From sequence record NC_041917.1: DNA of 64,000 bases, one strand, 5' to 3'. Below the pieces are notes generated by a model, which made no database searches, was not told the origin of the DNA, and was given only the letters and a program-made list of their open reading frames with translations. Made by a program: the position numbers and the translations under genes. Below are positions 1,822-57,822 of this stretch, one piece after another. Position 1 is the stretch's first letter; every line of letters begins with the position of its first letter.

Positions 1822-1850
1822 TGGAACGACAAAAAAACATATGGTATAAT
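1822..1850 (+). promoter_or_regulatory. Putative middle-type promoter TGGAAC-N17-TATAAT (TGG extended -10)
   Basis: One of 12 identically spaced copies in the window. Confidence 0.75.
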
Positions 1851-1853
1851 ATG

Positions 1854-1886
1854 AGCATCCTAACAAGGCGTTAGGGTGCTTTTTTT
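1854..1886 (+). terminator. Rho-independent terminator
   Basis: AGCATCCTAAC/GTTAGGGTGCT 11-bp stem (one G-U) followed by a T tract. Confidence 0.7.
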
Positions 1887-1902
1887 ATACATGGAGATAA
1901 TT

Positions 1903-2205
1903 ATGACCAAGAAGACTGAATCTAAGATCGAAGCACATGACCTAAATGATGCTCAACGTAAAAAGCTAAAAGATGGCTTGAATTCCGCTGTAGTTCAACT
2001 AACTCACCTAGACACCCTAAAAGAATCGTATGCTGATTTCATGGATACTCTAGCAGATGAAATTGGTCTTGACAAGGCAAAGCTAAAATCAGCAGCTATG
2101 CGTATCTATAAGCAGGATTTCTTCGATAAAGTTCGTGCTCAAGATGAGGTAGAGACAATTCTTACTGTTTCTGGTAATCTATCTGCACCAATGGATGACG
2201 AATAA
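1903..2205 (+). CDS. T4 DsbA-like double-stranded DNA-binding protein
   Basis: SD GGAGA before ATG 1903. About 100 aa, helical; the pattern ...LADEIGLDKAKLKSAAMRIYKQDF...EVETIL resembles T4 DsbA. Confidence 0.55.
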   Translation: MTKKTESKIEAHDLNDAQRKKLKDGLNSAVVQLTHLDTLKESYADFMDTLADEIGLDKAKLKSAAMRIYKQDFFDKVRAQDEVETILTVSGNLSAPMDDE

Positions 2206-2210
2206 TAAAT

Positions 2211-2240
2211 AATGCCCCAACGAATGGGGCATTTGCTTTT
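2211..2240 (+). terminator. Hairpin or terminator
   Basis: AATGCCCCA/TGGGGCATT stem followed by GCTTTT. Confidence 0.6.
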
Positions 2241-2267
2241 TAAGTGCGTGAATTATAAGGAGATAAG

Positions 2268-5200
2268 ATGTATATAGATGGATATATGGATAGAAAACGT
2301 ACTGGTGAAGTTCTGCATGTGGCTGAACGTGTCAATGGTCAACGTATCTTACGTGAAATTGAACCAGTTTACGAGTATTATGTAGAATCACCATATGGTA
2401 CATTTAAAACAATCAACGGAACCTTAGCTGAACGTTTTGAATTTACTAGATATTCCGAAATGAAGAAACAAATGGATACATTACCTAGTACTGCACAGAT
2501 TTTTGAAGCAGATTGTAATGTTACATTCAAAACATTAGCTAAACACTATATGGGTAAGTCATCACCTGATTTGAATATCGTATTTTTCGATATTGAAACG
2601 GACTTTCACCCAAAGTTCGGCTATGCGTCACCTAGTGATCCTTTCAATAGAGTTACTGCAATTTCATTATATCAAAGCTGGACAGGTAAGGATTATGTAC
2701 TTACTATGGCACCATCCGAGATGGAAATTGTAGAAGCACAAGATATTATCAACCGCTTGAATGCAGAAACAGATGATCCGAATAGTACTGTAGTACTTTA
2801 TACTGATGAATGTGAAATGTTCTCAGATTTCTTCGATTTGATTGAAGATTCTGATGTTTTATCTGGTTGGAACAGTGAGTTTTATGATATTCCTTATATG
2901 GTAAACCGAACTCGTAAATTGTTTAATGAAGCAACTCTTGCTCGTTGGTGTTTATGGAATCGTAAACCAAATCCTCGTGAAGCAGATATGTTTGGTAAAA
3001 CAATTGTAACTTATGATTTAGTAGGTCGCGTACATTTGGATTACCTAGCACTATACAAAAAACATGCTGGTCAAGTAGAACAATCATATAAATTGGATTA
3101 TATCGCAGAAAAAGTCACTGGTGAAAACAAAGTAGCATATGATGGGTCTTTGGATAAATTATATCGTGAAGATTATCTAAGATTTCTACGTTATTCCAAA
3201 CAGGATAGTATTCTTCTAAAGAAAATTGATGATAAGATGGATTTCATCAACCTACACAATCGATTAGCTCATAAAGAGTGTGTTCTAATAAGTACCACAA
3301 TGGGTTCTGTAGCACTAATTGATACTGCAATCATCAATCTAGCTCATAAACGCGGTGAAGTAGTATTCAACAAGCGTAAACTTGACGATGATGAAGATGA
3401 TTTCGATTATCAAGAGTATGAAATGGATTATGAAGATGAAGATGAAGACAATGATGAACCAAAAGCAGGTTCTAAAGCAGCAGGTGCATGGGTTCAAGAT
3501 CCAGTACTTGGTTTAATCGACTTCTTAGGCTGTGTAGACTTCAACTCACTATATCCAACAGTTCTACGTGCATTAGGTATGAGTACTGAATGTATTCTTG
3601 GTCAATTGCGTCAAACATATACAGATGCATATCTTGCTGAACGTATTGAAGAACAACGTATGAAATATCGTGGAAAAGGTCGATTTGAGCCTAAATGGAC
3701 TGAAGCATGGCATGGTTTATTTGCAAGTGTTGAATTTACTATGGTTCGTGAAAAATCAGATGGTATAATTACTGTTGATTTAGAAGATGGTTCATCATTC
3801 CAAGCAACTGGTGCAGAACTATATGATATTATCTATGGTGAAGGTAGTACTATAGTACTAAGTGCGAACGGAACGTTATTTGATAAGACAAAGTACGGTG
3901 TTATTCCAGAAATTCTTACAATTTGGTATTCTGAACGTAAAGCACAACAAAAAATGGTTATTGACTATAAGCATCTTGCAACAGATGGATGGGAATTAGC
4001 TGAAGAAATCGTTTCAGAATTGGAAGAAGCGTTGAAATCACTACAATATGGTGATAAAATTCACAAAACCAACTTACATGAGGATGATCCAGTATATCTA
4101 ATTCGCTTAGCACTAGCGAAGGGTGATATTGAAGGAACAGCAAAACTTATTGCTGAAAATGGTATGCGTTTTGAAGGTGGTAAGGTATTTGCACCTGAAA
4201 GTGATAAAAAATACTGTAAAACACAGTCTGCATTCTGGAAACAGAACCAACAGATTCGTAAAATTCTTCTAAACTCACTATACGGTGCTTTGTTGAATAA
4301 AGGTTCTCGTTTCTTCGACAAACGTCTAGGACAATCAGTAACGTTAACTGGTCGTAGTATGACTAAACACCTTGCAAGTAAGATAAATGAAGTATGTACT
4401 GAAACTTATGATCATAGTGGTGGTGTTGTAGTATATGGTGATACCGACTCAGTGTATTTTAGTGTAGCACACTATTATAAAGAGAATGATATACCGTTTG
4501 ACATGTCCAAAGAAGAAGTAATTGAACTATATCAGATGATTGGTGATACCGTAGGTGCATCATTCCCTTCATTTATGGATGAAACCTTTAATACTGGTAT
4601 TGATAATGGTAAGATTGTGGGAGCAGACTTAGAAATGGTTGGTTCTCGTGGATTATTCTTGAAAAAGAAACGTTATGCTATCCTAAAATATTGGGAAGAT
4701 GGATTCCGTTTAGATGTTGATGGAAAACCTGGTAAGGTTAAAGCGATGGGTCTTGAGATTAAACGTTCTGATACACCAAAATATATTCAAAACTTCCTAG
4801 AAGATACACTTACTGCATTACTTGTTGGTGCAGAGGAAGAAGAATTACGTGCTAAGGTTCGTGAATTCAAGAAACTATTCAAAGATCGTCCATCATTTGA
4901 GAAAGGTCAACCTAAAACAGTTAAAAATTATTCTAATAAGTTTAAAGAATATGAAGAAACTGGTCAATGTAGGGTAGGACACGTTCTTGCAGCAATACAA
5001 TGGAACAAATTGCGTACCATTTATGATGATATGTCAGTTCCAGAAGCTACTGACGGTACTAAAGTTATCGTTTGTAAGTTAAAACCAAACCCATATGGTA
5101 TTAAATCCGTTGGTTATCCAATAGATTGTACTGAATACTTACCTGAGTGGTTCTTATCATTGCCATTTGATGATGATGATATGGAAAAAGCCGTTCTTAC

Positions 5201-5300
5201 TAAGAAATTAGGTAACATTTTTGGTATTTTGGATATGGATTTGGCAATAAATGAAAAAAGTTCCATCGAATTGAACACTGGTTTCTTTGCATGGAGTTAA
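2268..5300 (+). CDS. 43: Family B DNA polymerase (gp43-like)
   Basis: ExoI FDIETD, ExoII GWNSEFYD, motif A DFNSLYP, motif B KILLNSLYG, motif C YGDTDS, KKRYA. Confidence 0.97.
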   Translation: MYIDGYMDRKRTGEVLHVAERVNGQRILREIEPVYEYYVESPYGTFKTINGTLAERFEFTRYSEMKKQMDTLPSTAQIFEADCNVTFKTLAKHYMGKSSPDLNIVFFDIETDFHPKFGYASPSDPFNRVTAISLYQSWTGKDYVLTMAPSEMEIVEAQDIINRLNAETDDPNSTVVLYTDECEMFSDFFDLIEDSDVLSGWNSEFYDIPYMVNRTRKLFNEATLARWCLWNRKPNPREADMFGKTIVTYDLVGRVHLDYLALYKKHAGQVEQSYKLDYIAEKVTGENKVAYDGSLDKLYREDYLRFLRYSKQDSILLKKIDDKMDFINLHNRLAHKECVLISTTMGSVALIDTAIINLAHKRGEVVFNKRKLDDDEDDFDYQEYEMDYEDEDEDNDEPKAGSKAAGAWVQDPVLGLIDFLGCVDFNSLYPTVLRALGMSTECILGQLRQTYTDAYLAERIEEQRMKYRGKGRFEPKWTEAWHGLFASVEFTMVREKSDGIITVDLEDGSSFQATGAELYDIIYGEGSTIVLSANGTLFDKTKYGVIPEILTIWYSERKAQQKMVIDYKHLATDGWELAEEIVSELEEALKSLQYGDKIHKTNLHEDDPVYLIRLALAKGDIEGTAKLIAENGMRFEGGKVFAPESDKKYCKTQSAFWKQNQQIRKILLNSLYGALLNKGSRFFDKRLGQSVTLTGRSMTKHLASKINEVCTETYDHSGGVVVYGDTDSVYFSVAHYYKENDIPFDMSKEEVIELYQMIGDTVGASFPSFMDETFNTGIDNGKIVGADLEMVGSRGLFLKKKRYAILKYWEDGFRLDVDGKPGKVKAMGLEIKRSDTPKYIQNFLEDTLTALLVGAEEEELRAKVREFKKLFKDRPSFEKGQPKTVKNYSNKFKEYEETGQCRVGHVLAAIQWNKLRTIYDDMSVPEATDGTKVIVCKLKPNPYGIKSVGYPIDCTEYLPEWFLSLPFDDDDMEKAVLTKKLGNIFGILDMDLAINEKSSIELNTGFFAWS

Positions 5301-5313
5301 AAAGGAAATATAT

Positions 5314-5778: not shown

Positions 5779-5795
5779 AAAAATATTTAAAAATA

Positions 5796-5824
5796 TGAAA
5801 CGTATACGAATTATATGGTATAAT
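5796..5824 (+). promoter_or_regulatory. Putative middle-type promoter TGAAAC-N17-TATAAT
   Basis: Matches the repeated consensus; overlapped by an inverted repeat ACGTATACGA/TCGTATACGT. Confidence 0.75.
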
Positions 5825-5855
5825 CGTATACGTAAACAACATGGAGAATTAACAA

Positions 5856-6587
5856 ATGGAATTACGTGACGTACTACGCGACCTAGTAACTACTACGGCA
5901 GGAATTGATTTTGATTGTATCGCTATTTCAAGCGAAGATCGTGGTCAAGGCCAAAGAATTTACATGGAAGCTTATACAAGTGATAAAAACCTAGTAATGC
6001 GAGCCGTTACTAAAGAAGATGTATCTGAAGTTGTTGGTCGTTTTGGTATTGGTAATCTTGGAATGCTTCAAGGTCTATTGAACCTAAATGTCTACAAATC
6101 AGACAGTACTAAAATTAGTGTGAATGCAAAAGATGGCGTTGTTAAAAGTCTATCCTTTACTTCAGACGATGCAAATACCAACTATCTAGTAGTTGCAGAG
6201 AAATTTATTCCACCTCAACCGCGTTTTACTGACCAACCATATGACGTACAGGTTACACCTAGTGCATCAAAGGTCAATGAACTAAAAAGCTTCTCAGGCG
6301 TGTTTAAATCTTTTACTGCTCACGTTACCCCTTATACTGAGGATAACAGCTTATACTTCTACGTAGGTGAAAAGAATAAAAACAACCATACTGGTACTTT
6401 ACTATTCTCTAAGACAGATGGCGATCTAACTCAGGGTTATGGTTATCCAATTGAACGTGTTCTTCAAGCATTGAATCGTGTAAACAATGCTGAACAAAAA
6501 TCTCTTGGTATTACAAAAACTGGTATGTTAAATGTAACTGTTGATACTGGTATTGCAGTTTATAGCATCTACGTAAGTGGTTGCTAA
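5856..6587 (+). CDS. 45: DNA polymerase sliding clamp (gp45-like)
   Basis: 243 aa with alternating alpha/beta pattern and an N-terminus MELRDVLRDLV like clamp homologs of this phage group; replication context with gp44 at 58891. Confidence 0.6.
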   Translation: MELRDVLRDLVTTTAGIDFDCIAISSEDRGQGQRIYMEAYTSDKNLVMRAVTKEDVSEVVGRFGIGNLGMLQGLLNLNVYKSDSTKISVNAKDGVVKSLSFTSDDANTNYLVVAEKFIPPQPRFTDQPYDVQVTPSASKVNELKSFSGVFKSFTAHVTPYTEDNSLYFYVGEKNKNNHTGTLLFSKTDGDLTQGYGYPIERVLQALNRVNNAEQKSLGITKTGMLNVTVDTGIAVYSIYVSGC

Positions 6588-6593
6588 TTAAAT

Positions 6594-9910: not shown

Positions 9911-9939
9911 TGGAACCACGCTCTAAAATGTGGTATAAT
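9911..9939 (+). promoter_or_regulatory. Putative middle-type promoter TGGAAC-N17-TATAAT
   Basis: Consensus match upstream of rnh. Confidence 0.75.
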
Positions 9940-9942: not shown

Positions 9943-10955
<1,013 letters not shown>

Positions 10956-10956
<1 letters not shown>

Positions 10957-15190: not shown

Positions 15191-15198
15191 TATAAATA
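15191..15198 (+). promoter_or_regulatory. T4 late promoter consensus TATAAATA
   Basis: Exact match upstream of gene 32. Confidence 0.6.
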
Positions 15199-15397: not shown

Positions 15398-16453
15398 ATG
15401 GCAACATTAGCAGAAATTCGTGCTCTATTAAAAGCAGAACAAGACAAAGCAGAAGCAATCAAAAGTGGTACATTCTCAGGCGGTAATGGTCAACCGGATG
15501 CGTTTCTAGCATTCTGGAACATTCCAGAGAATCAAGATTTGAATCTACGTTTTCTACCAGATTCAGATATTAATAACCCTTACTTCTGGCGTGAGCGTGA
15601 GATGATTAATCTTGAGTTCAACGGAATTGTTGGTGGTCACACCGATAAAGTTAAATTACAAGTACCTTGTAATGAAATGTGGGTTCCAAATTCTTGCCCT
15701 GTTCTTACTGAAATTCGTCAGTGGTATAAAGCTGCGAACGAAACTGGTAACGAAGATCTAAAGAAACAAGCATCTAAGTACTGGAAAAAGAAATCTTATC
15801 TATTCCAATGCCTAGTAGCTCCAGGTTCTGTTGAAGTTAAAGATGACAACGCACCTGAAAATCCAATTCGTCGTGTTCTAGTGAACAAAGATTTGTTCGA
15901 AAAGATTAAATCTATTCTAATGAATCCAGACGTTGCTGAACTTCCAACTCATTATCAACATGGACGTGATTTCCGTGTGATTAAGAGTAAGAATGCTGGT
16001 GGTTATAATAACTACGATGCTTCTCAGTTCAAATTCTCTGAGCGTCCACTAAATGAAGACGAACTAGCTGCAATTGAACAGTATGGCTTATTTGATCTAA
16101 GTGAGTTCATGCCAAAACAACCAACTCCAGAAGAACTAAATGCAATCCGTGAGATGTTTGAAGCATCTGCGAATGGTGAAGCATATGATCCTTCACGTTG
16201 GGCTGCATTCTACCGTCCAGCGGGTGTTCAAAAACCAGCAAATACTGGCTCAACCAGTACTACTGAAACCGTAAGTACTCCAGTAGCTAAACCTGCACAA
16301 ACTGTAACTGCTCCAGTACAAACTACTGTAACAGAAACTGTTGTGGCTCAAGAAGCACCAGTTCAAGAAACCGCTACTGCGGCTCCAACTGAGAGTAAGC
16401 AAAAACTTTCTCCAGCAGAACTAGTTGCAAAACTAAAAGCTAAAGGTGGCTAA
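15398..16453 (+). CDS. 32: Single-stranded DNA-binding protein (gp32-like)
   Basis: LRFLPD...F W, CP Zn-site residues (VPCNE...SCPV), YWKKKSY, DFRVIKS...YNNYDASQF, low-complexity C-tail; directly upstream of uvsX. Confidence 0.88.
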   Translation: MATLAEIRALLKAEQDKAEAIKSGTFSGGNGQPDAFLAFWNIPENQDLNLRFLPDSDINNPYFWREREMINLEFNGIVGGHTDKVKLQVPCNEMWVPNSCPVLTEIRQWYKAANETGNEDLKKQASKYWKKKSYLFQCLVAPGSVEVKDDNAPENPIRRVLVNKDLFEKIKSILMNPDVAELPTHYQHGRDFRVIKSKNAGGYNNYDASQFKFSERPLNEDELAAIEQYGLFDLSEFMPKQPTPEELNAIREMFEASANGEAYDPSRWAAFYRPAGVQKPANTGSTSTTETVSTPVAKPAQTVTAPVQTTVTETVVAQEAPVQETATAAPTESKQKLSPAELVAKLKAKGG

Positions 16454-19067: not shown

Positions 19068-20552
19068 ATGAGTGGAACTTGTAAGTTAATACTTCAAGAT
19101 GAAGTTAACTGTAAATTTGAGGGGCTTGCCCCTAATATTCGACAAGAGATGATTCGTAAAGTATCATTTGTTTTACCTTATGCGAAATTCACACCAGCAG
19201 GAAGAATGGGACGTTGGGATGGTAAAGTAAACTTTATGAATATCGGTGGTAGTACTTACTATCATATGTTAGATCAATTACTACCGATTCTTGAAAAACA
19301 TAATATCATGATTGAAATTGATGATCAACGTATTGAACATGATTTTGTATTCGATGCAATTGATGAAAATATTTTTGATTATGTTGAATTCCCTGCTGGA
19401 CACCATATGGAAGGACAAAAGATAGTTCTTCGTGAGCATCAGGTAAATGCAGTAAACACTTGCTTGCAGAACCGACATGGTTTACTATTGGCAAGTACTA
19501 GCTCCGGTAAAACATTAATTACTGCTGCAATGTCAAAAAGTGTTGAAAAGTATGGTAGAAGTATAGTTATCGTACCAAATAAAGATTTAGTACAACAAAC
19601 ATATAATGACTATGCAATGGTTGGTTTAGATGCAGGTGTATTTTATGGTGATAAAAAAGAATTAAACCATCAACATACTATTACTACATGGCAATCATTA
19701 AACTCCCTATGGAAGAAAACTAAGAAAGGTGAAATTGCTCTAACTGAGCAGGACATTAGTGACTTTATTAGTGGAGTTGTTGCAGTTGTTGTAGATGAAG
19801 CACATACGAGTGCAGCAGAAGCACTACATGCAGTACTTGGACAAGTAATGAAAAATATTCCTTTACGTTGGGGCTTGACTGGTACGATTCCTAAAGATCC
19901 AGTACTAGCAGCTAAGATTAAATGTAATGTAGGGGAGATTATCTATACAATATCTGCAAAAGAGTTGCAAGATAAACAAATTCTTAGTACTTGTAATGTC
20001 AATTGCATTAGATTAAAAAGTTCTCTAAAATTTGGTAATTACCAAGAAGAATTGAAGTATCTTGTTACTGACCGTGATAGAATGAAGTATATCGCATCTT
20101 TAATAGCTGCTATAGCTGAATCGGGAAACACATTAGTACTAGTTGATAGATTAGAAGCTGGTGAATTATTATGTGAATTCTTAGGAATACCAAAATCTGA
20201 ATTTGTTAGAGGTGAAACTAAGAAGAAAGACCGTGAAGCGTCTTATGGTGAAATACGATGGGCTGATAATAAGATACTTATTGCAACATATGGTGTAGCA
20301 AGTACTGGTATTAGTATTAGTAGATTATACAATGTAGTACTTATAGAACCTGGAAAAAGTTTTGTAAGAACTATTCAGAGTATAGGTCGTGGACTTCGCC
20401 GTGCAGAAGATAAAGACCATGTGGAGATCTATGATATTTCGGGCTTCAATAAGTTTAGTGCTAAGCATTCTCGTGAACGAATGTCGTACTATAAAGAAGT
20501 TCAATACCCTTATCAAGAATTGATTGTTGATAATTGGGAAAATATGGAATGA
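19068..20552 (+). CDS. uvsW: SF2 helicase UvsW
   Basis: LREHQ, STSSGKT, VVDEAH, GLTGT, TGISI, QSIGRGLR. Confidence 0.92.
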   Translation: MSGTCKLILQDEVNCKFEGLAPNIRQEMIRKVSFVLPYAKFTPAGRMGRWDGKVNFMNIGGSTYYHMLDQLLPILEKHNIMIEIDDQRIEHDFVFDAIDENIFDYVEFPAGHHMEGQKIVLREHQVNAVNTCLQNRHGLLLASTSSGKTLITAAMSKSVEKYGRSIVIVPNKDLVQQTYNDYAMVGLDAGVFYGDKKELNHQHTITTWQSLNSLWKKTKKGEIALTEQDISDFISGVVAVVVDEAHTSAAEALHAVLGQVMKNIPLRWGLTGTIPKDPVLAAKIKCNVGEIIYTISAKELQDKQILSTCNVNCIRLKSSLKFGNYQEELKYLVTDRDRMKYIASLIAAIAESGNTLVLVDRLEAGELLCEFLGIPKSEFVRGETKKKDREASYGEIRWADNKILIATYGVASTGISISRLYNVVLIEPGKSFVRTIQSIGRGLRRAEDKDHVEIYDISGFNKFSAKHSRERMSYYKEVQYPYQELIVDNWENME

Positions 20553-20573
20553 AAAGATTTTTTGTGATATAAT
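20545..20573 (+). promoter_or_regulatory. Putative middle-type promoter TGGAAT-N17-TATAAT
   Basis: Consensus match overlapping the end of uvsW. Confidence 0.7.
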
Positions 20574-20606: not shown

Positions 20607-21044
20607 ATGGAACTTCGTTCGAGTATCGCATTCATTGGCGATTCAGAAATTTTAGAAAATATTGATTCCTTAATTAATGAGGAAACTATAATCGATGACA
20701 TGGTGTTTTCGATAGATTTCATTCCTGAGCTTGAAACTAACGATACATATGTTTACCGCTGCACAACTGACGGCGACTCGTGGGTTAATATCTACGACAT
20801 TAAAACAAGACTTGATGACAAACTAGGTCAAGATGGAAAATATGACATAATTTATGCAAGTACTGATGGTACATCATATATAGATGTAATCAGTCATACA
20901 GGCAATTTTGATGCGTACTTAGATACTGACACTGATAAAATTCAAGAACTATGTGATACCTATGGATTGGAGTTCTACGGAAGTAATGATGATGATGATG
21001 ATTATTATCAAGATTCCGATGATGAAAACGACGATTATTATTGA
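20607..21044 (+). CDS. Highly acidic hypothetical protein
   Basis: About 40 D/E versus 7 K/R in 145 aa (hand count). Confidence 0.7.
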   Translation: MELRSSIAFIGDSEILENIDSLINEETIIDDMVFSIDFIPELETNDTYVYRCTTDGDSWVNIYDIKTRLDDKLGQDGKYDIIYASTDGTSYIDVISHTGNFDAYLDTDTDKIQELCDTYGLEFYGSNDDDDDYYQDSDDENDDYY

Positions 21045-23108: not shown

Positions 23109-23455
23109 AAAGTAAAATTTATGCTGAACAAGAATTAACCGATGAAGAAAAGAAACAAAAAGAAGAACTGAAGGAAGATGCAAAACAGTTATCAGTACTG
23201 AGACAAGGTACAGTAACTGAAATCACAATGGGTGGACAAACTTTTCAAGTATCTGACCCTAAAAGGATTGAACAAGCAATATCTTTCTTAGAGAGACATG
23301 AAGAATCTTTATTCACATTAAGACAACGAATTAAAGAACAGAACAAAGCAATAAATGTATTAATTCAAGAAATTGAAAAATTGAAAGCTGATGTTCAAAG
23401 ATTGAAAGAGGAAAGTAATAATGGATTTGGATCACAAGAGTACTCAAACTATTAA
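23105..23455 (+). CDS. Coiled-coil hypothetical protein
   Basis: Heptad-rich C-half; ATGA overlap with the previous gene. Confidence 0.65.
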   Translation: MKSKIYAEQELTDEEKKQKEELKEDAKQLSVLRQGTVTEITMGGQTFQVSDPKRIEQAISFLERHEESLFTLRQRIKEQNKAINVLIQEIEKLKADVQRLKEESNNGFGSQEYSNY

Positions 23456-24071
23456 TTACAGGAAAGCAAGAACTGATGTTGACATTGATTTTAAAGATGG
23501 GAAATCAGTTATTGAACAACTTCCTTGTACTAGAAGTGTTGAGAAAATTACAGAAGATGGATTGATACCGCATAATAGTGGTGTACATTTTGATAATATC
23601 CCTGTAGATCCAATTACTGGACTCGCATCTATACAATATAAAGAAGCCGAAAGATTAGGATACCAAAAAGTGGATATTCTGTCTCAATCGGCTTATGAAC
23701 ATGTACGTGATCGAAATCACTTAAAAGAACTAATGAATAAAGAACCAGATTGGGATTTATTATTAGTACCTGAAATAGTAGAACAGTTGTCTCAAATTAA
23801 GAAACATATAACTTTGTTACATGTGTGGCGACCTAGTAGTATCGATGAATTAGCTATGTTTATTGCTATGATACGTCCAGGAAAACGTCAATGTCAAAGT
23901 ATGAATAGTTGGGATGAAGTGCGGGCTGTTATTTGGGATTATGATAGTATTGGACTCGATGCAGAAGGTAGAAAGTTAAGATACTTTAAAAAACCTCATG
24001 CATACGCATATAGTTTGATGATTGTGGTTCAGTTAAATGCTTTAGTAGAATTTCTTACTTCTTCTTCTTGA
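23421..24071 (+). CDS. DnaE (Pol III alpha)-like fragment: catalytic palm and fingers
   Basis: RTDVDIDF (PDFDVDF), HNSGVHF (HAGGVVI), KVDILSQ (KFDFLGL), AMIRPG (ALFRPG), FKKPHAYAY (FNKSHSAAY). Confidence 0.85.
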   Translation: MDLDHKSTQTINYRKARTDVDIDFKDGKSVIEQLPCTRSVEKITEDGLIPHNSGVHFDNIPVDPITGLASIQYKEAERLGYQKVDILSQSAYEHVRDRNHLKELMNKEPDWDLLLVPEIVEQLSQIKKHITLLHVWRPSSIDELAMFIAMIRPGKRQCQSMNSWDEVRAVIWDYDSIGLDAEGRKLRYFKKPHAYAYSLMIVVQLNALVEFLTSSS

Positions 24072-25440: not shown

Positions 25441-25441
25441 T

Positions 25442-25470
25442 TGGAATGTCCTATAAAAATGTGGTATAAT
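25442..25470 (+). promoter_or_regulatory. Putative middle-type promoter TGGAAT-N17-TATAAT
   Basis: Consensus match upstream of primase. Confidence 0.75.
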
Positions 25471-25499: not shown

Positions 25500-26546
25500 A
25501 TGATGAATCAAGTACAAAATATTATCGCAAACATTGTCCACGATCCTGCACCAATTATGGATCGTTGGAATCAACATAATTGCCCTGCTTGTACATCTAG
25601 AGGGCAATCAAGACCTGATACAAAAGGCCGTGGCAACCACATGTTCTTGAACGATGGTTCTGTAGCCTATAATTGTTTCAACTGCCACTTAAAGACTGTA
25701 TGGACACCTGGAAAGTACATTAGTAAAGATATGGATGCTTTACTAAGATCTTATGGTGCATCAGAAAAAGAAATGGCACAAATAAAATTCATCGTTAAAG
25801 AAATGGTAGAAAGCGGTGACTATGAAGTACAGGAAAACAGTGCTTCAAAAATCTATCAAAAAATAGTAAGACGTGAACTACCTCAAGGTGCAAGACCATT
25901 TTTGGATTGGGCTAATGATCCTGTCATTCCACCTGACTTTATTAAAGTCATTAATGCAATTAATGAGCGTAATCCGTATATGCTGGACTTAGATTTATAT
26001 TGGAGTCCATCGAAAGAATTTTACATGCATCAACGTTTTATCATTCCATATTATATGAATGGTCAAATTATTGGTTATACTGCTCGGCATATGGACGTAA
26101 ATAGCGAATATCGTTATAGAAATCAAGTAAGCACGAGCATTTTTTATAACTTCGATTTGTTGAATGATGATCGGGTTAAAGTAATATTAGTTGCAGAAGG
26201 ACCAATTGATGCTGCACTAATGGGTGGTTTATCTGCAAATAACTATTTCTTATGTGCATCTCAATTGGAGTTGTTGCATAAAGCACAAGAACGTGGTAAA
26301 AAAATAGTTATTGTACCAGATAGAGATAAAGATGGTTTAGTAACAATAGAACAAGCAATAGAGCACGGATTCAGTGTAGCAATGCCTGACTTTGGTGCTG
26401 TACGTGATGAAAATGGAATTCGTCACATTAAGGATTTTGATGAAGCATGTGCTAAATTTGGTAGATTATTCTGTTTACAGATGATTCACAATAGCATCTA
26501 TGATGATAAATTCGATATAAGAGTACAAACTGAAAAATGGATTTGA
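25500..26546 (+). CDS. 61: DNA primase (gp61-like)
   Basis: Zn-finger CPAC...CFNC; TOPRIM VAEGPIDA and VPDRDKDG; adjacent to the helicase. Confidence 0.88.
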   Translation: MMNQVQNIIANIVHDPAPIMDRWNQHNCPACTSRGQSRPDTKGRGNHMFLNDGSVAYNCFNCHLKTVWTPGKYISKDMDALLRSYGASEKEMAQIKFIVKEMVESGDYEVQENSASKIYQKIVRRELPQGARPFLDWANDPVIPPDFIKVINAINERNPYMLDLDLYWSPSKEFYMHQRFIIPYYMNGQIIGYTARHMDVNSEYRYRNQVSTSIFYNFDLLNDDRVKVILVAEGPIDAALMGGLSANNYFLCASQLELLHKAQERGKKIVIVPDRDKDGLVTIEQAIEHGFSVAMPDFGAVRDENGIRHIKDFDEACAKFGRLFCLQMIHNSIYDDKFDIRVQTEKWI

Positions 26547-31555: not shown

Positions 31556-31891
31556 ATGAGGTTCAGTCAGATAACCGAAGATGCACCAGGTAAAGATATA
31601 CGTAATATGATTAGTACTATAGCTTTATCATTAATCGCTACTGGTAGAGAACAAATAAGTATTCAATCATTGATTAATGAAATAAAAAAGCGTACTAATA
31701 TCGATGTTCCATATAATGTAATGATGGATATTCTTAATGAACTTCCATTTGTTCAGGATGCAAATTCTGATATGGTAACACTTCAAGGCTCTGATACATC
31801 ACCTGATGGTGATAATGCAGAATCATCAGAAGAACAAGTTACTGATATGGCAACTAAAGCAGCATCATCAAATTTAAAACAAGATATTTGA
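31556..31891 (+). CDS. Probable internal head protein
   Basis: MRFSQITED N-terminus typical of head-packaged, protease-processed proteins of T4-like phages. Confidence 0.5.
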   Translation: MRFSQITEDAPGKDIRNMISTIALSLIATGREQISIQSLINEIKKRTNIDVPYNVMMDILNELPFVQDANSDMVTLQGSDTSPDGDNAESSEEQVTDMATKAASSNLKQDI

Positions 31892-31917
31892 AACAAACGA
31901 AAAACATGTGCTATAAT
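31889..31917 (+). promoter_or_regulatory. Putative middle-type promoter TGAAAC-N17-TATAAT
   Basis: Consensus match upstream of the exonuclease. Confidence 0.75.
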
Positions 31918-37435: not shown

Positions 37436-37642
37436 ATGGCATTTCAAAGTAATGATATATTCACATTTGATCCGGCATGGATATATAAATTTACATTAAT
37501 GGGTGGATTACAAATAACCGGCACTATAATTAGACCTTTTGATAATGGGATAGTACTAAACGATGGCACCCATATCCCAACGGATAAGATAGTATGCTTT
37601 GTACCAATATCTATTATAAAAGAAAATGAAACACCAGAATAA
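37436..37642 (+). CDS. Small Hfq/Sm-like protein (tentative)
   Basis: FTLMGGLQITGTIIRPFD aligns with the Hfq Sm1 IYLVNGIKLQGQIESFD; HIPTDKIVCFVP aligns with Sm2 MVYKHAISTVVP. Confidence 0.45.
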   Translation: MAFQSNDIFTFDPAWIYKFTLMGGLQITGTIIRPFDNGIVLNDGTHIPTDKIVCFVPISIIKENETPE

Positions 37643-37655
37643 TTTCTGGTATAAT
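37627..37655 (+). promoter_or_regulatory. Putative middle-type promoter TGAAAC-N17-TATAAT
   Basis: Consensus match; the spacer holds the inverted repeat ACCAGAA/TTCTGGT. Confidence 0.75.
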
Positions 37656-40488: not shown

Positions 40489-40517
40489 TGAAACGGAGAA
40501 CAACAATATGGTATAAT
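40489..40517 (+). promoter_or_regulatory. Putative middle-type promoter TGAAAC-N17-TATAAT
   Basis: Consensus match, divergent from the holin pair. Confidence 0.75.
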
Positions 40518-44225: not shown

Positions 44226-44253
44226 TTGACTTTTACGAAATTCGTGTTATAAT
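44226..44253 (+). promoter_or_regulatory. Sigma70-like promoter TTGACT-N16-TATAAT with extended -10
   Basis: Near-consensus, upstream of IF3. Confidence 0.6.
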
Positions 44254-49985: not shown

Positions 49986-50351
49986 ATGATAAGCACGATT
50001 TTTATTCTACTCATAGCATTTCAAATAAAGCATTTTCTTTGTGATTACCCATTACAAGGAAGATTTATGTTAGGTAAGTTCAATAAAGAAGGTTGGGAGT
50101 TACCATTAGCTGCACATGCTGGTGTTCACTTCATAGGAACATTCTTGATTGCATTGTTCTTCGGATTCTGGATTGCATTAACAGTTGCAGTACTAGATTT
50201 TGTTATTCACTTCGTAGTTGATAAAATAAAAGTTGAAGCTTCACGCAAAACTGATCATAGTAAACCTGAGTTCTGGTGGTATCTAGGTTTAGACCAAATG
50301 GCACACCACTTAACACATTACATGATAATTGCTATATTAGTTCTACTATAA
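49986..50351 (+). CDS. DUF3307-like membrane protein
   Basis: KHFLCDYPLQ, AHAGVH, HFVVDKIK, LGLDQMAH. Confidence 0.78.
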   Translation: MISTIFILLIAFQIKHFLCDYPLQGRFMLGKFNKEGWELPLAAHAGVHFIGTFLIALFFGFWIALTVAVLDFVIHFVVDKIKVEASRKTDHSKPEFWWYLGLDQMAHHLTHYMIIAILVLL

Positions 50352-50356
50352 ATATT

Positions 50357-50386
50357 AACGATGCAGAGATGCATCGTTATTTTTTT
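50357..50386 (+). terminator. Rho-independent terminator
   Basis: AACGATGCA-GAGA-TGCATCGTT followed by A and a T-tract. Confidence 0.75.
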
Positions 50387-50414
50387 GAAACAAAGAAACA
50401 AATTATGCTATAAT
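50386..50414 (+). promoter_or_regulatory. Putative middle-type promoter TGAAAC-N17-TATAAT
   Basis: Consensus match upstream of the topoisomerase. Confidence 0.75.
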
Positions 50415-50447: not shown

Positions 50448-52436
50448 ATGGCAAAGGAAAAGAAAAGTTCTGTTCTAGCTGAACACGGTGTTCAACAATT
50501 AACTGAATATCAACATGCTCGAATCCGTACTGAAATGTACTTAGGTTCGAAGTCTGAACATGAGCAACCAGTTCTTCTATTCAACGAAGATGGTTATACT
50601 GTGCAAAATTTAGGTTGGGTTCCTGCCCTATTAACATCATTCCGAGAAATCGTTGATAACTCGTTAGATGAATTCGTTAAAGCTGGTACTAAAGATCCAG
50701 TACTACGTGTTACATATAATGAAGATGAACTTGATTTTGAAATTAGCGATAACGGTCGTGGTATTCCAATTGATTATGTTCCAGAAACACAAAAACATGT
50801 GTGTACTATGGTACTAACCGAGATGAAAACTGGTCGTAACTTTAATGATGATGAACGTAACAATGTCGTTGGTATGAACGGTCTTGGTGGTTCAGTTGTT
50901 ATGATTGTAAGTGAGAAAGCTGAAATCGAAATTCACCGTGCAGGTAAGCCTTACAAAACTGACAAAGCAAATGCAGAATATGATGGTATGTATAAATTCA
51001 CACAAAAGTTCACTGAAGGTACAGCAATGTTCCCTGAACTTGGAATTGAAGAACCAAGTATTCGCAAAGTAAAAGCTGATAAGACTGGAACTACGGTTCG
51101 ATTCAAAATCAGTAAAGAAGTATTCAAAGTACACACACTACCTATTCAACTAGTATATAGTATTCTTAAAGAAGTTGCAGCGGCGAATCCATCGTACAAA
51201 ATCTTTTTGAATGATCAACGAATTACTGTGAATAAAAAAGGTTTATTTAGTTCTGCTAAGAATACAATGACTCTTAAAGTTGATGACAGTGAAACTGGAC
51301 TTGACAGTACTTTCTACATTGTACCCAATGTAGTACAGGGTCTTAACAAGAACCTACATATGCAAGGTCTTGTTAACAACGCACCATCACTAGAAGGTGG
51401 TACACACTTAGATACGTTCCAACAGAAATTTGCACTTGGTGTTATCAATGCATTGGATCGTATTCCAAAAAATAGAAAACGCAATCTAAAACCAAACCGT
51501 TCTGATATTGAAGAAGGTCTGTTGATTTACAACATCACTAAGATGAATACACCAACATTCAACTCTCAAATCAAAACAAAACTAACTAATGAAAACGTCA
51601 TAAAGCCAGTACAAAACGCAATGAGCGATGAATTCTTTAATGAACTTGTTAAGAAAAATACCGAGTGGGTTGAAGAAATTTATACTCGTTGTGCTGAACG
51701 TACCAATAAAAAGGATGCAGACGAAGATCGTAAAATGGCAAAACGTCTTCTAAAAGGCAAAGTAGCTAAACTACGTGATGCAAATGGTCAAAACCGAAGT
51801 GAATGTATTCTTCTAATTGCAGAAGGTGATTCAGCAGTAAGTTCTATGACAGCGGCACGTAACTCTACTATTCATGGCATTCTTCCATTACGTGGTAAGA
51901 TTCAAAACGTAAATGGAAAAGAGAAGACAAAAGATCTAATGGGTACTGCGGATAAGCCATCTGCAATTCATGATATTATGGCTTCTTTAAACATTGTTCC
52001 TGGCGAAAAAGCAGTTCGTTCAAATATGAACTTTGGTAAACTTTATATCTGTGCAGATGAAGATGAAGATGGTAAGAACATCGGTGCTCTAGTAGTAAAC
52101 TTCTTCTATAAATTCTGGCCTGAATTGTTTGCTGATCCAGAAGATCCATTCATTTATATTTTCAAAACCCCATTCATTATTTTAGAAAAGGGCAAAGAAT
52201 CTAAGTACTACTATGGTCATAATGTCCATGAGTATAATCCTGATGATTGGAAAGGTTGGAAAGCAACTCGTGCTAAAGGGTTAGGTACTCTTGAAGTATC
52301 AAACTTCAGAGATGCACTAGCAAATGGTGTAGCAATCGCAATTACTGATGATGGTTCATTAGGGGAAACTCTAGATCTTATCTTCAATAAAGAACGTGCT
52401 GATGACCGTAAAGAATGGACTAAAGAAGACGTGTAA
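50448..52436 (+). CDS. 39: Type II topoisomerase ATPase/TOPRIM subunit (gp39+gp60 fused)
   Basis: EIVDNSLDE, DNGRGIP, GMNGLGG, AEGDSA, PLRGKIQNV, DEDEDG, KGLG. Confidence 0.95.
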   Translation: MAKEKKSSVLAEHGVQQLTEYQHARIRTEMYLGSKSEHEQPVLLFNEDGYTVQNLGWVPALLTSFREIVDNSLDEFVKAGTKDPVLRVTYNEDELDFEISDNGRGIPIDYVPETQKHVCTMVLTEMKTGRNFNDDERNNVVGMNGLGGSVVMIVSEKAEIEIHRAGKPYKTDKANAEYDGMYKFTQKFTEGTAMFPELGIEEPSIRKVKADKTGTTVRFKISKEVFKVHTLPIQLVYSILKEVAAANPSYKIFLNDQRITVNKKGLFSSAKNTMTLKVDDSETGLDSTFYIVPNVVQGLNKNLHMQGLVNNAPSLEGGTHLDTFQQKFALGVINALDRIPKNRKRNLKPNRSDIEEGLLIYNITKMNTPTFNSQIKTKLTNENVIKPVQNAMSDEFFNELVKKNTEWVEEIYTRCAERTNKKDADEDRKMAKRLLKGKVAKLRDANGQNRSECILLIAEGDSAVSSMTAARNSTIHGILPLRGKIQNVNGKEKTKDLMGTADKPSAIHDIMASLNIVPGEKAVRSNMNFGKLYICADEDEDGKNIGALVVNFFYKFWPELFADPEDPFIYIFKTPFIILEKGKESKYYYGHNVHEYNPDDWKGWKATRAKGLGTLEVSNFRDALANGVAIAITDDGSLGETLDLIFNKERADDRKEWTKEDV

Positions 52437-53896: not shown

Positions 53897-53900
53897 ACCA

Positions 53901-53928
53901 AAAGGACGCTAATGCGTCCTTTATTTTT
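53901..53928 (+). terminator. Rho-independent terminator
   Basis: AAAGGACGC-TAAT-GCGTCCTTT followed by ATTTTT. Confidence 0.75.
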
Positions 53929-53984
53929 TAATTGCGAACATATAATAAATACCACAAAGCTTTTTATGTTTTTGGAGATAATAT

Positions 53985-56900
53985 ATGGCAAACTTCGAAC
54001 CCAAATGGGATTTGAGAGCTGATACCAATTCAATTAAAGAAGGACAGACCACATACTTTAGACTACGAATTTCTAAAAGTCAAACAACTTCACCAAATAA
54101 TGAATATGTACTTCAAGATGATCAATATCTTGAATTTACATTTAATATTGTCGGGGCAGGGGAAACTTTAGAAGAACGTGATTTTAATGTATCTATAGGT
54201 GAAAGTACTTCTTCTTTAGTTCCAATCGGTGAAGCTGGAACTGGAACCCCTCATATTCAGGGTAAACATGTAGTAAAACTTAGTAGAAAAGATTTCCAAT
54301 TAAGTTCAAGCGTAACATTCATTGATGCATTCTTTTTTAAAATAGAATGTCCTGAAGATGGTATATGGGATGGTCCAGAATCATTAACATTTAACATTGA
54401 CAGCATAAATGAAATTACTCTTTTAGATGGTCAAATTGCAAATACAATGCCAAGTGGGGTATTGGGAACTAGTACACAAGTACTGAATTATAATACTGCT
54501 GGAGAAATTTGGCTAACACCTAATTTAACGACCCACGGTGATAATCTTTATACAATTGGTGGTATTGGATATGGTGCCGAAAGTAGATTGTTCATTCAAG
54601 CATTTGGACAAAGTAGAACAATAAATGGTGTAACTAATGTTTTTATGCCATCGTATGAAGTGCAAGATATAACAATGTCAGATATTCCATCTGAACATAT
54701 TACTGGTTCAGGAACAATTTTAGTACCGGATGAATCGGCACTACCTTCTATTCCAGAATATCCTATAACTTTAGGTACTACTAGAAATCAAATAAATTCA
54801 TTTTATATGAAGAATGTTGCTAATTTAATGTCTGGTGCTGGTTGTATTATTCAAGGAACTACACTAACAGATCATAATAATGAACTCTATTATAGTTATG
54901 GAATAAGAGTATATGCAAATACTGGTTTCAAATTAATGTGTCCAGCAGAAGCAGAAAGTATATATGTAAGTAATGTAAATGCTGTAAATGCAGGTGGTAT
55001 AAATTCTTCATTGTCTGAATTAACAGAATATGGTATATTAGATACGAACAAAATTGGTAGATGTGATATATATGGTAATGTAAAACATGAACCACAAACA
55101 ATAGTCTTACCACCATCCACTACCGGTGGTCAAATGGTAATTTATATTCGAGTTAAGGTTAGTAATACAATTTGCCCACCTTGGATTTCATTTAATGTAA
55201 TATCATTTAATAGTCCAATTCTAAAATCTTCTAATACATTGGATAATAGAATTTATATTAATACAAACAGTACTGCATTAAATTCAGTTGAACTAGATAA
55301 CATTTTACATGCAGCAGTTGCTGGTTCTGGATGGACAACATCATATAATGCCAATAATACAAAAAATCAAGTACCAAATACTATAGAACCAGTTGTGATT
55401 CGAAAATTAGAGGAAAACTCTATTATGATCAGAGATGAAATTGGAAATATGGTACAATCAGGATTGAAATTTAATGCTAATGGACAATTTGTTCAAACAT
55501 TCATTTATGATTCAGAACCAGTAGATGCATATTTTCGTGCAACTATTCTTTCTATAAAGGATTTTTATAATACTGATACTGATGCATACTATGTTGGTAA
55601 AAGATTCCGTGCATATAATGTATGGGTTTGTCCAGCAGATGTTACTAACTTCTCAACAAAACCAAAACCTGGACATTTATATCAATTAAAAGATACTAAA
55701 GTATATCCTTATGTTGTTAAAGATACTGTTGTTGAAGGTATAACTAAAATTTTATTTGAAGAAGATAAATGGTACGATTTAGGATTGTATAATGAATCAT
55801 TAGGTGCTAATATCATAGGTTCCGAAAGGATGTTTAGAATTGTAGTTAATGATGATACTGGTACTGATATTTCTTTTGAAACTGATTCCAACTTAGGTGA
55901 AATTCATGTTGGTGAATATTTTGGTCATACGGTTTATCCAAAAATCGTTGCAACTGGCTCAGAATTAATAACCTACACAATAAATGCAAGTACTTCACCA
56001 AATGATATTACAAAGTACGGAATAGATTTAACTGCTGATGGATTTATTGTAGGGGAAGCATATGCATTAAGTACTGATTTTTCTGCCAATGATGACATAC
56101 CTTTGCAGTTCGATGTAGTTGCAACTGGTAAAAACGGTAAATCATTGACACAACGTTTTAAAATTCGTATAATTCGTGGTTTAGGGCAAAACTTCTTACA
56201 TGCTGATATTTGTCCATCACTTTCATTAGAACGTGCATGGTTCAGAATGATTAGTACTACATCATTTAGTAGAGCAAATTACTATCGTGCATCAGATCCA
56301 AGATATGGTGTTAAGAAAGTCCCACGTATTCTTATGAAAGAAAACTTCGTTGATCCTAATAAGAATTGGGAAGGGATAAAACAAACAGTATTAAATATTC
56401 GAAATGGTATTGTTGATACAGCACATGGTGCACCTACACCAGATGGTTCATTCCGACTAGTACTAGGGAATTATAAATTACGTTCAGCACTTGACAATCA
56501 AGGAAATGTACTGTATGATGTTTTATACAGAGAGTTACATTCAGAAGGAACACAAGTAAGTTTAAGTTTAAATCCATTGAAATATACTGATTATTCAACA
56601 TCACTTATTTCAGAAATTTATGGTCTACGTCAAAATGTGTACAACATTGTTGGTGAAGATACTGTGAACTTATTAACTGATCCTACAGATTTGAATAATC
56701 GTGGTATAGTAGTTGATCCTATTAACGGATTATCAGTTGAAATGCTAGATACAGTTCCTCGTTATATGAACCATCCATATGTTGAAGATAACATTAAGCC
56801 AATGTACTTCCCATGTATACCAGTTGCTTACTTACAACCAGGACAAGGGGAAGTATTCTTTAATACATTGATTCAAAATAACGAACATGGTACATTACTC

Positions 56901-57014
56901 AATACTGAGTTTGAAGTTTCTGGAGTTGAATTCAGTTACTTCGTACAAGACAATGAGAGATACGTACCAGAAACCTTTATGGCCTCATTAAGAGTGCCTA
57001 ACCTATTTCAATAA
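53985..57014 (+). CDS. Large virion structural protein (baseplate/tail, Ig-like domains)
   Basis: 1009 aa, beta-rich; Calx-beta/Ig-like N-terminus (SIKEGQT...DGIWDGPESLTF); late-type AATAAATA at 53944-53951. Confidence 0.6.
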   Translation: MANFEPKWDLRADTNSIKEGQTTYFRLRISKSQTTSPNNEYVLQDDQYLEFTFNIVGAGETLEERDFNVSIGESTSSLVPIGEAGTGTPHIQGKHVVKLSRKDFQLSSSVTFIDAFFFKIECPEDGIWDGPESLTFNIDSINEITLLDGQIANTMPSGVLGTSTQVLNYNTAGEIWLTPNLTTHGDNLYTIGGIGYGAESRLFIQAFGQSRTINGVTNVFMPSYEVQDITMSDIPSEHITGSGTILVPDESALPSIPEYPITLGTTRNQINSFYMKNVANLMSGAGCIIQGTTLTDHNNELYYSYGIRVYANTGFKLMCPAEAESIYVSNVNAVNAGGINSSLSELTEYGILDTNKIGRCDIYGNVKHEPQTIVLPPSTTGGQMVIYIRVKVSNTICPPWISFNVISFNSPILKSSNTLDNRIYINTNSTALNSVELDNILHAAVAGSGWTTSYNANNTKNQVPNTIEPVVIRKLEENSIMIRDEIGNMVQSGLKFNANGQFVQTFIYDSEPVDAYFRATILSIKDFYNTDTDAYYVGKRFRAYNVWVCPADVTNFSTKPKPGHLYQLKDTKVYPYVVKDTVVEGITKILFEEDKWYDLGLYNESLGANIIGSERMFRIVVNDDTGTDISFETDSNLGEIHVGEYFGHTVYPKIVATGSELITYTINASTSPNDITKYGIDLTADGFIVGEAYALSTDFSANDDIPLQFDVVATGKNGKSLTQRFKIRIIRGLGQNFLHADICPSLSLERAWFRMISTTSFSRANYYRASDPRYGVKKVPRILMKENFVDPNKNWEGIKQTVLNIRNGIVDTAHGAPTPDGSFRLVLGNYKLRSALDNQGNVLYDVLYRELHSEGTQVSLSLNPLKYTDYSTSLISEIYGLRQNVYNIVGEDTVNLLTDPTDLNNRGIVVDPINGLSVEMLDTVPRYMNHPYVEDNIKPMYFPCIPVAYLQPGQGEVFFNTLIQNNEHGTLLNTEFEVSGVEFSYFVQDNERYVPETFMASLRVPNLFQ

Positions 57015-57023
57015 GGAGGATTT

Positions 57024-57326
57024 ATGTTTCATCCGTTTTTCGATCCTTCATCTTTAAGTGATAAAGAACTTTATGATAAAATCACTGAAGTTTCGCTTCG
57101 TATAAGTGCTGCTCGTTCAGCAGGTATACAATACGAAATGATACAATCTATGTTCACCGTAATTCAAGCTTGTGAGTTTGAGATTCAGAATCGCCAAGCT
57201 CACAAAGACTTGGAGCAAGCGGCAAAAGAAGATAATTGTATTTTTGATTCAGACAGCTATTTAAATGACAAAGATGATAAGAAACATGAAAGTACAAGAA
57301 AACAGAACTATAAGCGAGGATGGTGA
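57024..57326 (+). CDS. Hypothetical protein
   Basis: SD AGGAGGA. Confidence 0.7.
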   Translation: MFHPFFDPSSLSDKELYDKITEVSLRISAARSAGIQYEMIQSMFTVIQACEFEIQNRQAHKDLEQAAKEDNCIFDSDSYLNDKDDKKHESTRKQNYKRGW

Positions 57327-57804
57327 TGTACGTTTAAATCTGAACGCCGTGGTTTATGCAATAAATTGCGGCACAGATATTACATATATCCAGCTTAATG
57401 AGCAAGATGAATTTGAACGTTTAAAGTTCAATGACAACTGCAAGAAATTTGGACTATCGGAACGTATGTTAGATTACACCATAGAACATGATAAAAATCA
57501 TGAATTATGGCGGTATGATCCAGCTTATGATAAAATCAACTTAGAAGATTATTTTCTTTCTTTATGTAGTACTGATATAGAACGTGATAGAGTACTATAT
57601 GAATTAAGTTTATATGAAAACTATAACATGACTAAACTATTACGCTGTATGATATGGTTGGTAGATTACCTAGAAGAACATAATATTTTTTGGGGATTAG
57701 GTCGTGGAAGTTCCGTAAGTAGCTTCTGTTTATACTTGATTGGATTACACTTAGTTGATTCAGTTAAATATGAATTAGATGTGAATGAATTTTTGAAATG
57801 GTAA
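57265..57804 (+). CDS. DnaE (Pol III alpha)-like fragment: N-terminal palm part (start may be 57274 or 57286)
   Basis: ERDRVLYEL..YE..NM..LL.CMIWLVDYLEEHNIFWGLGRGSSVSSFCLYLIGLHLVDSVKYELDVNEFL aligns with DnaE ERLETEL...[34 protein letters not shown]. Confidence 0.85.
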   Translation: MTKMIRNMKVQENRTISEDGDVRLNLNAVVYAINCGTDITYIQLNEQDEFERLKFNDNCKKFGLSERMLDYTIEHDKNHELWRYDPAYDKINLEDYFLSLCSTDIERDRVLYELSLYENYNMTKLLRCMIWLVDYLEEHNIFWGLGRGSSVSSFCLYLIGLHLVDSVKYELDVNEFLKW

Positions 57805-57822
57805 AAAAATTTATGGTATAAT
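57794..57822 (+). promoter_or_regulatory. Putative middle-type promoter TGAAAT-N17-TATAAT
   Basis: Consensus match. Confidence 0.72.

Follow-up and report, generated by a model that had tools for sequence, protein, structure and literature searches.

The promoters closest to those considered here were described in phage CBB (Buttimer et al. 2017, PMC5259590), for which three classes were predicted: 18 RpoD-like promoters clustered in the presumed early region, where a gene for an RNA polymerase sigma factor also lies; 18 'divergent' promoters, predicted by MEME, that combine a classic -10 with TGAAACG as the -35 consensus, 11 of them in front of DNA-synthesis genes and one in front of a gp55-like sigma gene; and a late class with the motif ATAAATA. 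The CBB paper names no reader for the divergent class and cites the same motif from phage GAP32 (Abbasifar et al. 2014). Promoters are not covered in the papers on RaK2 and on the BF-like Erwinia phages, and RaK2-like jumbo phages carry both minimal and complete RpoD-like sigma factors (review, PMC7824862). Here, we analyze the corresponding promoters of Serratia phage BF (Eneladusvirus; KY630187 / NC_041917; 357,154 bp), a jumbo myovirus of the RaK2-like type whose replication and late-transcription core resembles that of T4, in a stretch of 64,000 nucleotides (hereafter, the window) that matches positions 186001-250000 of the record with 100% identity; the remainder of the record was also scanned for the motif. 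Coordinates refer to the window unless preceded by 'record'.

The BF motif is not new: the same consensus has been published for its sister phages CBB and GAP32, and the BF class is orthologous to the predicted divergent RpoD-like class. The two share the -35 element TGAAAC(G), a classic -10, concentration at DNA-synthesis genes and a site before the gene for a gp55-like sigma factor, and nothing essential differs between them. What the present analysis contributes beyond the CBB and GAP32 papers is the count of 40 sites in the BF genome, the tRNA and RNA targets, the lineage-specific hexamers and the link to a helix in sigma region 4. We give about an even chance to the combined proposition that the RpoD-like sigma factor of RaK2-like phages (gp413 in BF) reads this class directly through a rebuilt region 4 with a beta-hairpin insert and a new recognition helix, that helix and hexamer diverged together between genera (TGRAAC, TGRGAY and YTGAAC; R, A or G; Y, C or T), and that the same promoters drive an undescribed structured RNA present in five copies. 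If this is the case, RaK2-like jumbo phages would hold natural orthogonal sigma/promoter pairs with a housekeeping -10.

Better known systems resemble the BF class in part. Like T4 middle promoters, it carries a phage element in place of the -35 ahead of a sigma70-type -10 and would serve replication genes after the early phase and before gp55-dependent late transcription; however, the T4 element is (a/t)(a/t)(a/t)TGCTTtA centred at -30 whereas in BF, TGRAAC occupies -35 to -30 and the N17 spacer is fixed, and T4 has motA and asiA whereas in BF neither was detected and a complete sigma gene is found instead. In SPO1-type cascades (gp28, then gp33/34), an early-encoded replacement sigma redirects the host core and a late factor follows, as proposed here for BF, but the BF -10 stays housekeeping-like with only the -35 altered, and the candidate sigma factor is a complete RpoD-like protein that includes regions 2, 3 and 4. 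An 'AAC motif' is a typical feature of the -35 of ECF promoters (PMC5758882). The -35 of the Bacillus subtilis sigmaW promoter, TGAAAC-N16-CGTA, is letter-identical to the BF TGAAAC, AAC motif included. This likeness is confined to the DNA level: ECF promoters have a CGT-type -10 and a two-domain (sigma2, sigma4) factor, whereas the BF -10 is TATAAT with TG and gp413 has region 3. Finally, enterobacterial extended -10 promoters share TGnTATAAT with the BF class (37 of the 40 sites, with a perfect -10), to which BF adds a -35 element that is non-canonical, lineage-specific, invariant and fixed in its spacing.

A sharply defined promoter class in the BF genome

A pattern scan for TGRAAY-N17-TATAAT yields 12 exact matches in the window, all on the + strand, compared to a chance expectation of 0.29 (mean of 100 dinucleotide shuffles; maximum 3). 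All 12 have TG at -15/-14, two bases ahead of TATAAT (as TGG, TGA or TGC), and all are located in intergenic regions or within the final few bases of the preceding gene (Table 1); for eight of these sites, the predicted 5' untranslated region is 22-27 nt long. An earlier, sequence-only reading of the window had listed the same twelve positions with the same spacing and TG, and the scan reproduced them exactly. Across the whole genome, the class extends far beyond these twelve, to 40 exact sites (39 on the + strand, 37 with TG). All other spacer lengths from 14 to 20 bp give between 0 and 3 matches each, against 40 at N17. With a weight matrix derived from the sites, 39 sites score at least 20 bits and are followed by only two or three weaker ones, and no site reaches 20 bits in first-order Markov random sequence with the transition frequencies of the genome. 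The matrix places TGRAAC at -35 to -30 and contains no TGCTT, in agreement with the initial observation that the -35 position holds neither TTGACA nor a MotA box.

Conservation extends outside the search pattern, to a purine after the hexamer (92% of the sites), an A-tract in the spacer, T at -17, G at -13, A/T at -6/-5 and an A-rich segment at -42 to -38, so that the consensus runs A-rich, TGRAAC, R, N4, A-tract, TnTGG, TATAAT. These promoters are a distinct, sharply defined class. Their description as replication-gene promoters is too narrow. In the genome as a whole, class promoters are also located in front of at least seven tRNA genes, Lon, genes of nucleotide metabolism, the gene for the gp55-like late sigma (record 169796) and non-coding RNA loci. 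One class promoter lies 10 nt ahead of tRNA-Ser and six further tRNA genes are headed likewise, with predicted leaders of just a few nucleotides; several others face stretches of 0.5-0.8 kb without annotated genes.

The candidate reader gp413 and its recognition helix

The sequence-only reading had suggested that a second sigma factor might be encoded elsewhere in the genome, and one is found: gp413, a 330-residue protein of the sigma70 family encoded outside the window (record 330365-331357), RpoD-like and with the -35-contacting residues replaced. Pfam identifies region 2 (PF04542, E 1e-6) and region 3 (PF04539, E 3e-4, below its cut-off), and the core-binding 2.2 motif is retained as GLMKA. 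The nearest solved structures by sequence are SigA, RpoD and RpoS (residues 80-305; SigA in PDB, E 2e-17), and the AlphaFold model, built with 43 homologs, matches full-length sigmaS and sigmaA chains. In this model, region 4 adopts a helix-turn-helix fold (pLDDT 87-93) with an 8-residue beta-hairpin inserted between its two helices. When the C-terminus was compared to PDB sequences, only marginal matches to RpoD region 4 were obtained (E about 0.4) and none to ECF region 4; Pfam detects weak region 4 matches at the C-termini of the sigma factors of phages ph0011 and RaK2. That gp413 is an ECF sigma factor can be ruled out because it has region 3, is nearest to SigA and RpoS and has a region 4 without an ECF match. 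In Escherichia coli RpoD, R584, E585, R588 and Q589 contact the -35 hexamer. The equivalents in gp413 are K, A, S and R, and with all four contact residues replaced, a different -35 specificity is to be expected. Around the gp413 gene, small + strand genes form a block in which canonical TTGACA-N16/17-TATAAT promoters are abundant.

Matches to the sigma factor are present in 102 phage records, with ~70 full-length hits among them. For seven relatives, we examined both the surroundings of the polymerase gene and the gene for the sigma factor. Within a 43 kb span, each of the nine BF class sites has its own counterpart at the corresponding gene junction in CBB and in Yen9-04; between BF and CBB, identity at these sites is 96% in the -35 and 100% in the -10, compared to 60% for the spacer and 60-64% for the flanks. 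The helix KATLSRR accompanies TGRAAY-N17 in BF (9 sites) and in Yen9-04 (10 sites). CBB also has TGRAAY-N17 (9 sites); its sigma factor is 80% identical to that of BF, and the helix, not aligned for CBB itself, was taken from the close relative GAP32 (KATLSRR), which entered the comparison with its helix only and not its promoters. In XaC1, with a sigma factor only 39% identical to that of BF, the helix KPTLSRR goes with TGAAAY-N17 (8 sites). Salmonella phage 7t3 combines RTSLHRC with TGGGAY, mostly at N18 (8 sites), and Escherichia phage ph0011 combines RSSVHRK with TGRGAC-N17 (3 exact sites plus variants), whereas no site in BF, Yen9-04, CBB or XaC1 has G at hexamer position 4. RaK2 (RGTLHYK) has YTGAAC at 7 sites, read by eye. 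For phage Hallingskeid, with the helix HSTIHRR, G at position 4 was predicted before the DNA was read, and all 9 sites carry it (TGRGAY-N17). Thus, recognition helix and -35 hexamer co-vary across the eight phages, K(A/P)TLSRR with TGRAAY and His-type helices with TGRGAY. TGAAAY promoters are also present in three more metagenomic lineages with a K-type helix. A one-residue code, in which the equivalent of E585 is A or G with hexamer A4 and S or T with G4, fits the eight phages, the one advance prediction included; given two contigs with mixed hexamers and the confinement to one clade (see below), we retain it as an association and not as a code. In the PA5oct-type phages, which share the polymerase, there is no match to this sigma factor and no class motif in 42 kb; their published promoters are of the TTGAC/TATAATA type.

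XaC1 differs in the -10 region, TGTTC-TATACT, where TG is located two bases further upstream and is absent from -15/-14 (for example, at 19537-19567 and 23448-23478 of its contig, L015). Because TGAAAC is retained there without this TG, the -35 element is the constant part of the class. The sigma factor of XaC1 reads PKYLSND in region 3.0 where that of BF reads PEHLSMH, and this may be a second co-variation, of the extended -10 with region 3.

Proposed transcription program and competing explanations

In the scheme that we propose, the host sigma70 holoenzyme would transcribe the canonical early regions (record ~1-20 kb and ~248-346 kb), the gp413 gene included. gp413 would then join the host core RNA polymerase, with its regions 2 and 3 reading the housekeeping-type extended -10 and its diverged region 4, with the KATLSRR helix and the beta-hairpin insert, reading TGRAAC at -35. 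In this manner, gp413 would switch on the replication, nucleotide and tRNA genes together with the structured RNA in its five copies and the gene for the gp55-like late sigma, and the late sigma would then read T4-type late promoters. That gp413 reads the class, possibly with additional early firing by sigma70, seems to us slightly more probable than the opposite, and from the gene content and the place of the sigma gene in the early region, we infer that the class is delayed-early or middle. The resulting map of BF transcription would assign the early regions to canonical promoters, the replication, tRNA and RNA genes to some 40 TGRAAC promoters, and the virion genes to T4-type late promoters. 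The candidate role of the phage sigma factor as the reader gains support from the comparison of genomes.

Several observations weigh against this role of gp413. The Pfam region 4 model does not match the protein, even when the C-terminus is searched alone. In region 2.3-2.4, gp413 has T and A in place of W433/W434, and E458 in region 3.0, which helps sigma70 to read TG, is replaced by M; with these residues missing, reading of TGnTATAAT by gp413 is assumed rather than evident. The sequence directly upstream of the gp413 gene offers only a weak promoter-like site, along with a terminator-like hairpin. A perfect extended -10 suffices for sigma70 in E. coli, and the perfect TGnTATAAT makes some early firing by the host factor likely. 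The co-variation represents only one or two independent evolutionary events: in the sigma tree, the His-type helices all belong to one clade, so the hexamer may have changed from A to G just once and the co-variation is statistically weak, and two metagenomic contigs with His-type helices have the mixed hexamers TGAAAT, TGAAAC and TGGGAT. An unrecognized co-evolving activator could produce the same pattern. The public sequencing runs that contain pieces of this region (n=20) are nearly all DNA; one possible RNA run and two runs of undeclared type give scattered contigs at a depth of 2-4, with no start sites.

The sites could alternatively be ordinary extended -10 promoters for which host sigma70 suffices from the onset of infection, with TGRAAC tolerated as a weak -35 or kept for some other reason and the phage sigma serving other promoters. 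The TGnTATAAT, the A-rich tract upstream and the A-tract in the spacer all fit this explanation, and immediate expression would be an advantage for tRNA and replication genes. The hexamer itself can be read either way: in the N17 register, it matches TTGACA at only 2 of 6 positions, and a shift by one base gives nTGAAA at 18 bp spacing, with 4-5 of 6 matches. In the shifted register, however, the first position is T in just 35% of the sites, and both C at hexamer position 6 (88%) and the purine that follows are conserved although they lie outside the sigma70 -35. In information content, the hexamer equals the -10, and its conservation between phages with diverged spacers is 94-96%; XaC1 retains TGAAAC without the TG; the hexamer varies by lineage while the hosts remain enterobacteria with the same sigma70; and no other over-represented motif is left for gp413. 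Together, these features make reading by sigma70 alone unlikely.

An even less probable arrangement is one in which host sigma70 reads the -10 and a phage activator, a MotA analogue with or without an AsiA-like remodeller, binds TGRAAC, gp413 not being the reader. An element at -35 to -30 combined with a good -10 is reminiscent of the way in which sigma is appropriated at the middle promoters of T4. Extended -10 promoters of T4 resist AsiA, which can be counted in favour of such an arrangement. AsiA is also present in some group 2 jumbo phages (PMC7824862). In BF, no homolog of T4 AsiA or MotA was found by phmmer and six-frame tblastn searches of the whole genome (best E 0.2-0.5, at single-sequence sensitivity only), and the annotation names no AsiA- or MotA-like factor. 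Furthermore, the sigma recognition helix tracks the hexamer, and the rigid N17 spacing is as expected for direct reading by a sigma factor. The initial proposal had been a phage-encoded sigma factor or an activator that remodels sigma70; with a sigma gene present and no AsiA or MotA homolog detected, the sigma branch of this choice is favoured. Spread of a mobile or recombining promoter cassette by duplication, instead of site-by-site selection for one reader, would account for the unusual uniformity of the sites and the mild enrichment of inverted repeats within them, and promoter cassettes do occur in T4-type phages, but it is very improbable given that spacers and flanks vary from site to site and that orthologous sites occupy the same junctions in phages with 60-70% surrounding identity, which points to old placement and purifying selection on the two hexamers. 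A sigma54 reading (TGGCAC-like) is ruled out by the spacing and the clear -10, and the little probability that is left belongs to explanations other than these.

If gp413 is the reader, the wider question is how a complete phage RpoD-like sigma factor would change its -35 specificity alone. This question is now easy to test because phages that infect E. coli, Salmonella, Klebsiella, Erwinia and Serratia provide natural helix/hexamer pairs, and such sigma/promoter pairs could become orthogonal expression parts.

Structured RNAs, hairpins and other promoters

Each of the five BF copies of a conserved element of ~220-260 nt (Table 1) lies 10-60 nt downstream of a TGRAAC-class promoter. A search with nhmmer finds exactly five copies in BF, and the element is present in six other phages and two metagenomic contigs, in three lineages directly after the sigma gene. 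In the RNAalifold consensus of 11 copies, 20 of the 37 pairs show compensatory double changes and almost none are broken; the copy at 174 kb is conserved over ~750 nt across genera. No Rfam 15 family matches the element at the gathering score or at E up to 5-10, and it looks like an undescribed family of structured RNAs.

Table 1 Coordinates of class promoters and other features of the BF genome and its relatives
Feature	Coordinates	Strand	Remarks
Class promoter, TGGAAC-N17-TGG-TATAAT	1822..1850	+	heads gp260 (1903-2205), then DNA polymerase (2268-5300); orthologous sites in Yen9-04 and CBB
Class promoter	5796..5824	+	heads gp263 (5856-6587), gp45/PCNA-like sliding clamp (putative); palindrome overlaps
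Class promoter	9911..9939	+	heads RNase H (9970-10956)
Class promoter P1	15201..15229	+	heads SSB gene (15398-16453); T4-late-like TATAAATA at 15191-15198 adjoins upstream
Class promoter P2	15288..15316	+	heads SSB gene
Class promoter, TGGAAT variant	20545..20573	+	heads gp280 (20607-21044); begins within last bases of uvsW
Class promoter	25442..25470	+	heads primase (25503-26546) and primase-helicase
Class promoter	31889..31917	+	heads exonuclease gp298 (31931-32632); leader only ~7 nt
Class promoter	37627..37655	+	heads gp304-gp306 (MazG-like pyrophosphohydrolase)
Class promoter	40489..40517	+	heads gp309, DHFR, RNase H, Dda
Class promoter	50386..50414	+	heads topoisomerase II (50448-52436); TATAAATA upstream at 50347-50354
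Class promoter	57794..57822	+	heads gp327-gp330; clamp loader 58897-59850 (Pfam/PHROG)
Class promoters ~10-20 nt before tRNA genes	record 269235, 281184, 288063, 289616, 306183, 310174, 319208		Ser, Leu, Arg, suppressor-type, Pro, Met, pseudo-tRNA
Terminator-like hairpin, 12 bp stem and U7	1853..1886	+	begins 2 nt after -10 of promoter 1822; z -5.4 to -7.0
Palindrome, 9-10 bp arms	5800..5836	+	~-31 to +4 of clamp promoter
Canonical-type promoter TTGACT-N16-TATAAT	44226..44253 (record 230226)	+	
Two canonical-type promoters, TTGACA-N17-TAGAAT (62640) and TTGACA-N17-TAAAAT (62699)	62640..62727 (record 248640, 248699)	+	start of canonical-promoter region
Conserved element ~220-260 nt, five BF copies	record 30296-30542, 93012-93229, 174481-174737, 258797-259029, 335306-335544		outside window, unannotated gaps
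Element copies in relatives	L013:5517-5771, L014:6509-6741, L015 (XaC1):4303-4571, L011:4710-4940, L018:2538-2768, L012:4551-4776, L030:3474-3662, L029:9939-10027		

Rfam has no match within the window, and elsewhere in BF its matches are to tRNAs only. Two class promoters (record 300515 and 300699) face an unannotated gap (record 300517-301010) with three stretches that resemble the T-arm of tRNAs (GGTTCGAATCC-like); neither the annotation nor Rfam at the gathering score calls a tRNA there.

The arms of the palindrome at the clamp promoter are wholly different yet complementary in BF, Yen9-04, CBB, 7t3, Hallingskeid, ph0011 and RaK2 (stems of 9-14 bp, z -3.6 to -7.7), and the palindrome is missing in XaC1. 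As its right arm is mostly upstream of the expected start site, a hairpin could form only in read-through RNA of the polymerase operon or in single-stranded DNA. The terminator-like hairpin at the first class promoter begins so close to the -10 that its 5' arm overlaps the predicted start site, an arrangement kept in five lineages (BF, RaK2, XaC1, ph0011 and Hallingskeid). This hairpin may terminate the tail-fibre transcripts that arrive from upstream and let through part of those started within the stem; alternatively, it may attenuate the polymerase operon. At SSB promoter P1 (15207-15229), the first bases of the spacer, ATTATACCA, are exactly the reverse complement of TGGTATAAT, the extended -10. 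Spacer inverted repeats of at least 6 bp are present in 5 of 39 sites compared to 2.7% of mismatched site pairs, a mild excess (register-free permutation test, p ~0.002); a fixed-column test for pairing of spacer positions gave nothing convincing. We make no claim for the 8 bp palindrome at the late sigma promoter of BF, which relatives conserve by identity, with no compensatory change.

With respect to the genes behind the class promoters, the C-to-T variant of the gp280 promoter is retained at the orthologous site in six phages. gp263 looks like a gp45/PCNA-like clamp, as judged from atlas features only. gp260 (1903-2202) weakly matches the PHROG 'transcriptional regulator' family phrog_639 (E 2e-6), which is compatible with its 'dsbA' label without verifying it.

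Canonical TTGACA promoters had been reported only at 44226 and 62640/62699. These three are present, but the window also contains perfect TTGACA-N17/18-TATAAT matches at 56145-56173, inside the virion gene gp324, and at 63352-63381, overlapping the start codon of gp336; both are probably non-functional. In many canonical early promoters (record ~13-19 kb and 322-346 kb; 62631-62655 in the window), the -35 is embedded in a G+C-rich hairpin, GGGGTTGAC...GTCAGCCCC, followed by Ts, and others are preceded by GTAC (AAAGTACTTGACA). T4-type phages have promoter-plus-stem-loop cassettes, which the early hairpin promoters of BF recall.

The T4-late-type box TATAAATA is depleted in the window (5 observed, 10.9 expected). 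Two of these boxes are located directly 5' of class promoters, one at the SSB gene and one at the topoisomerase gene, and given this proximity, both genes may have dual timing.

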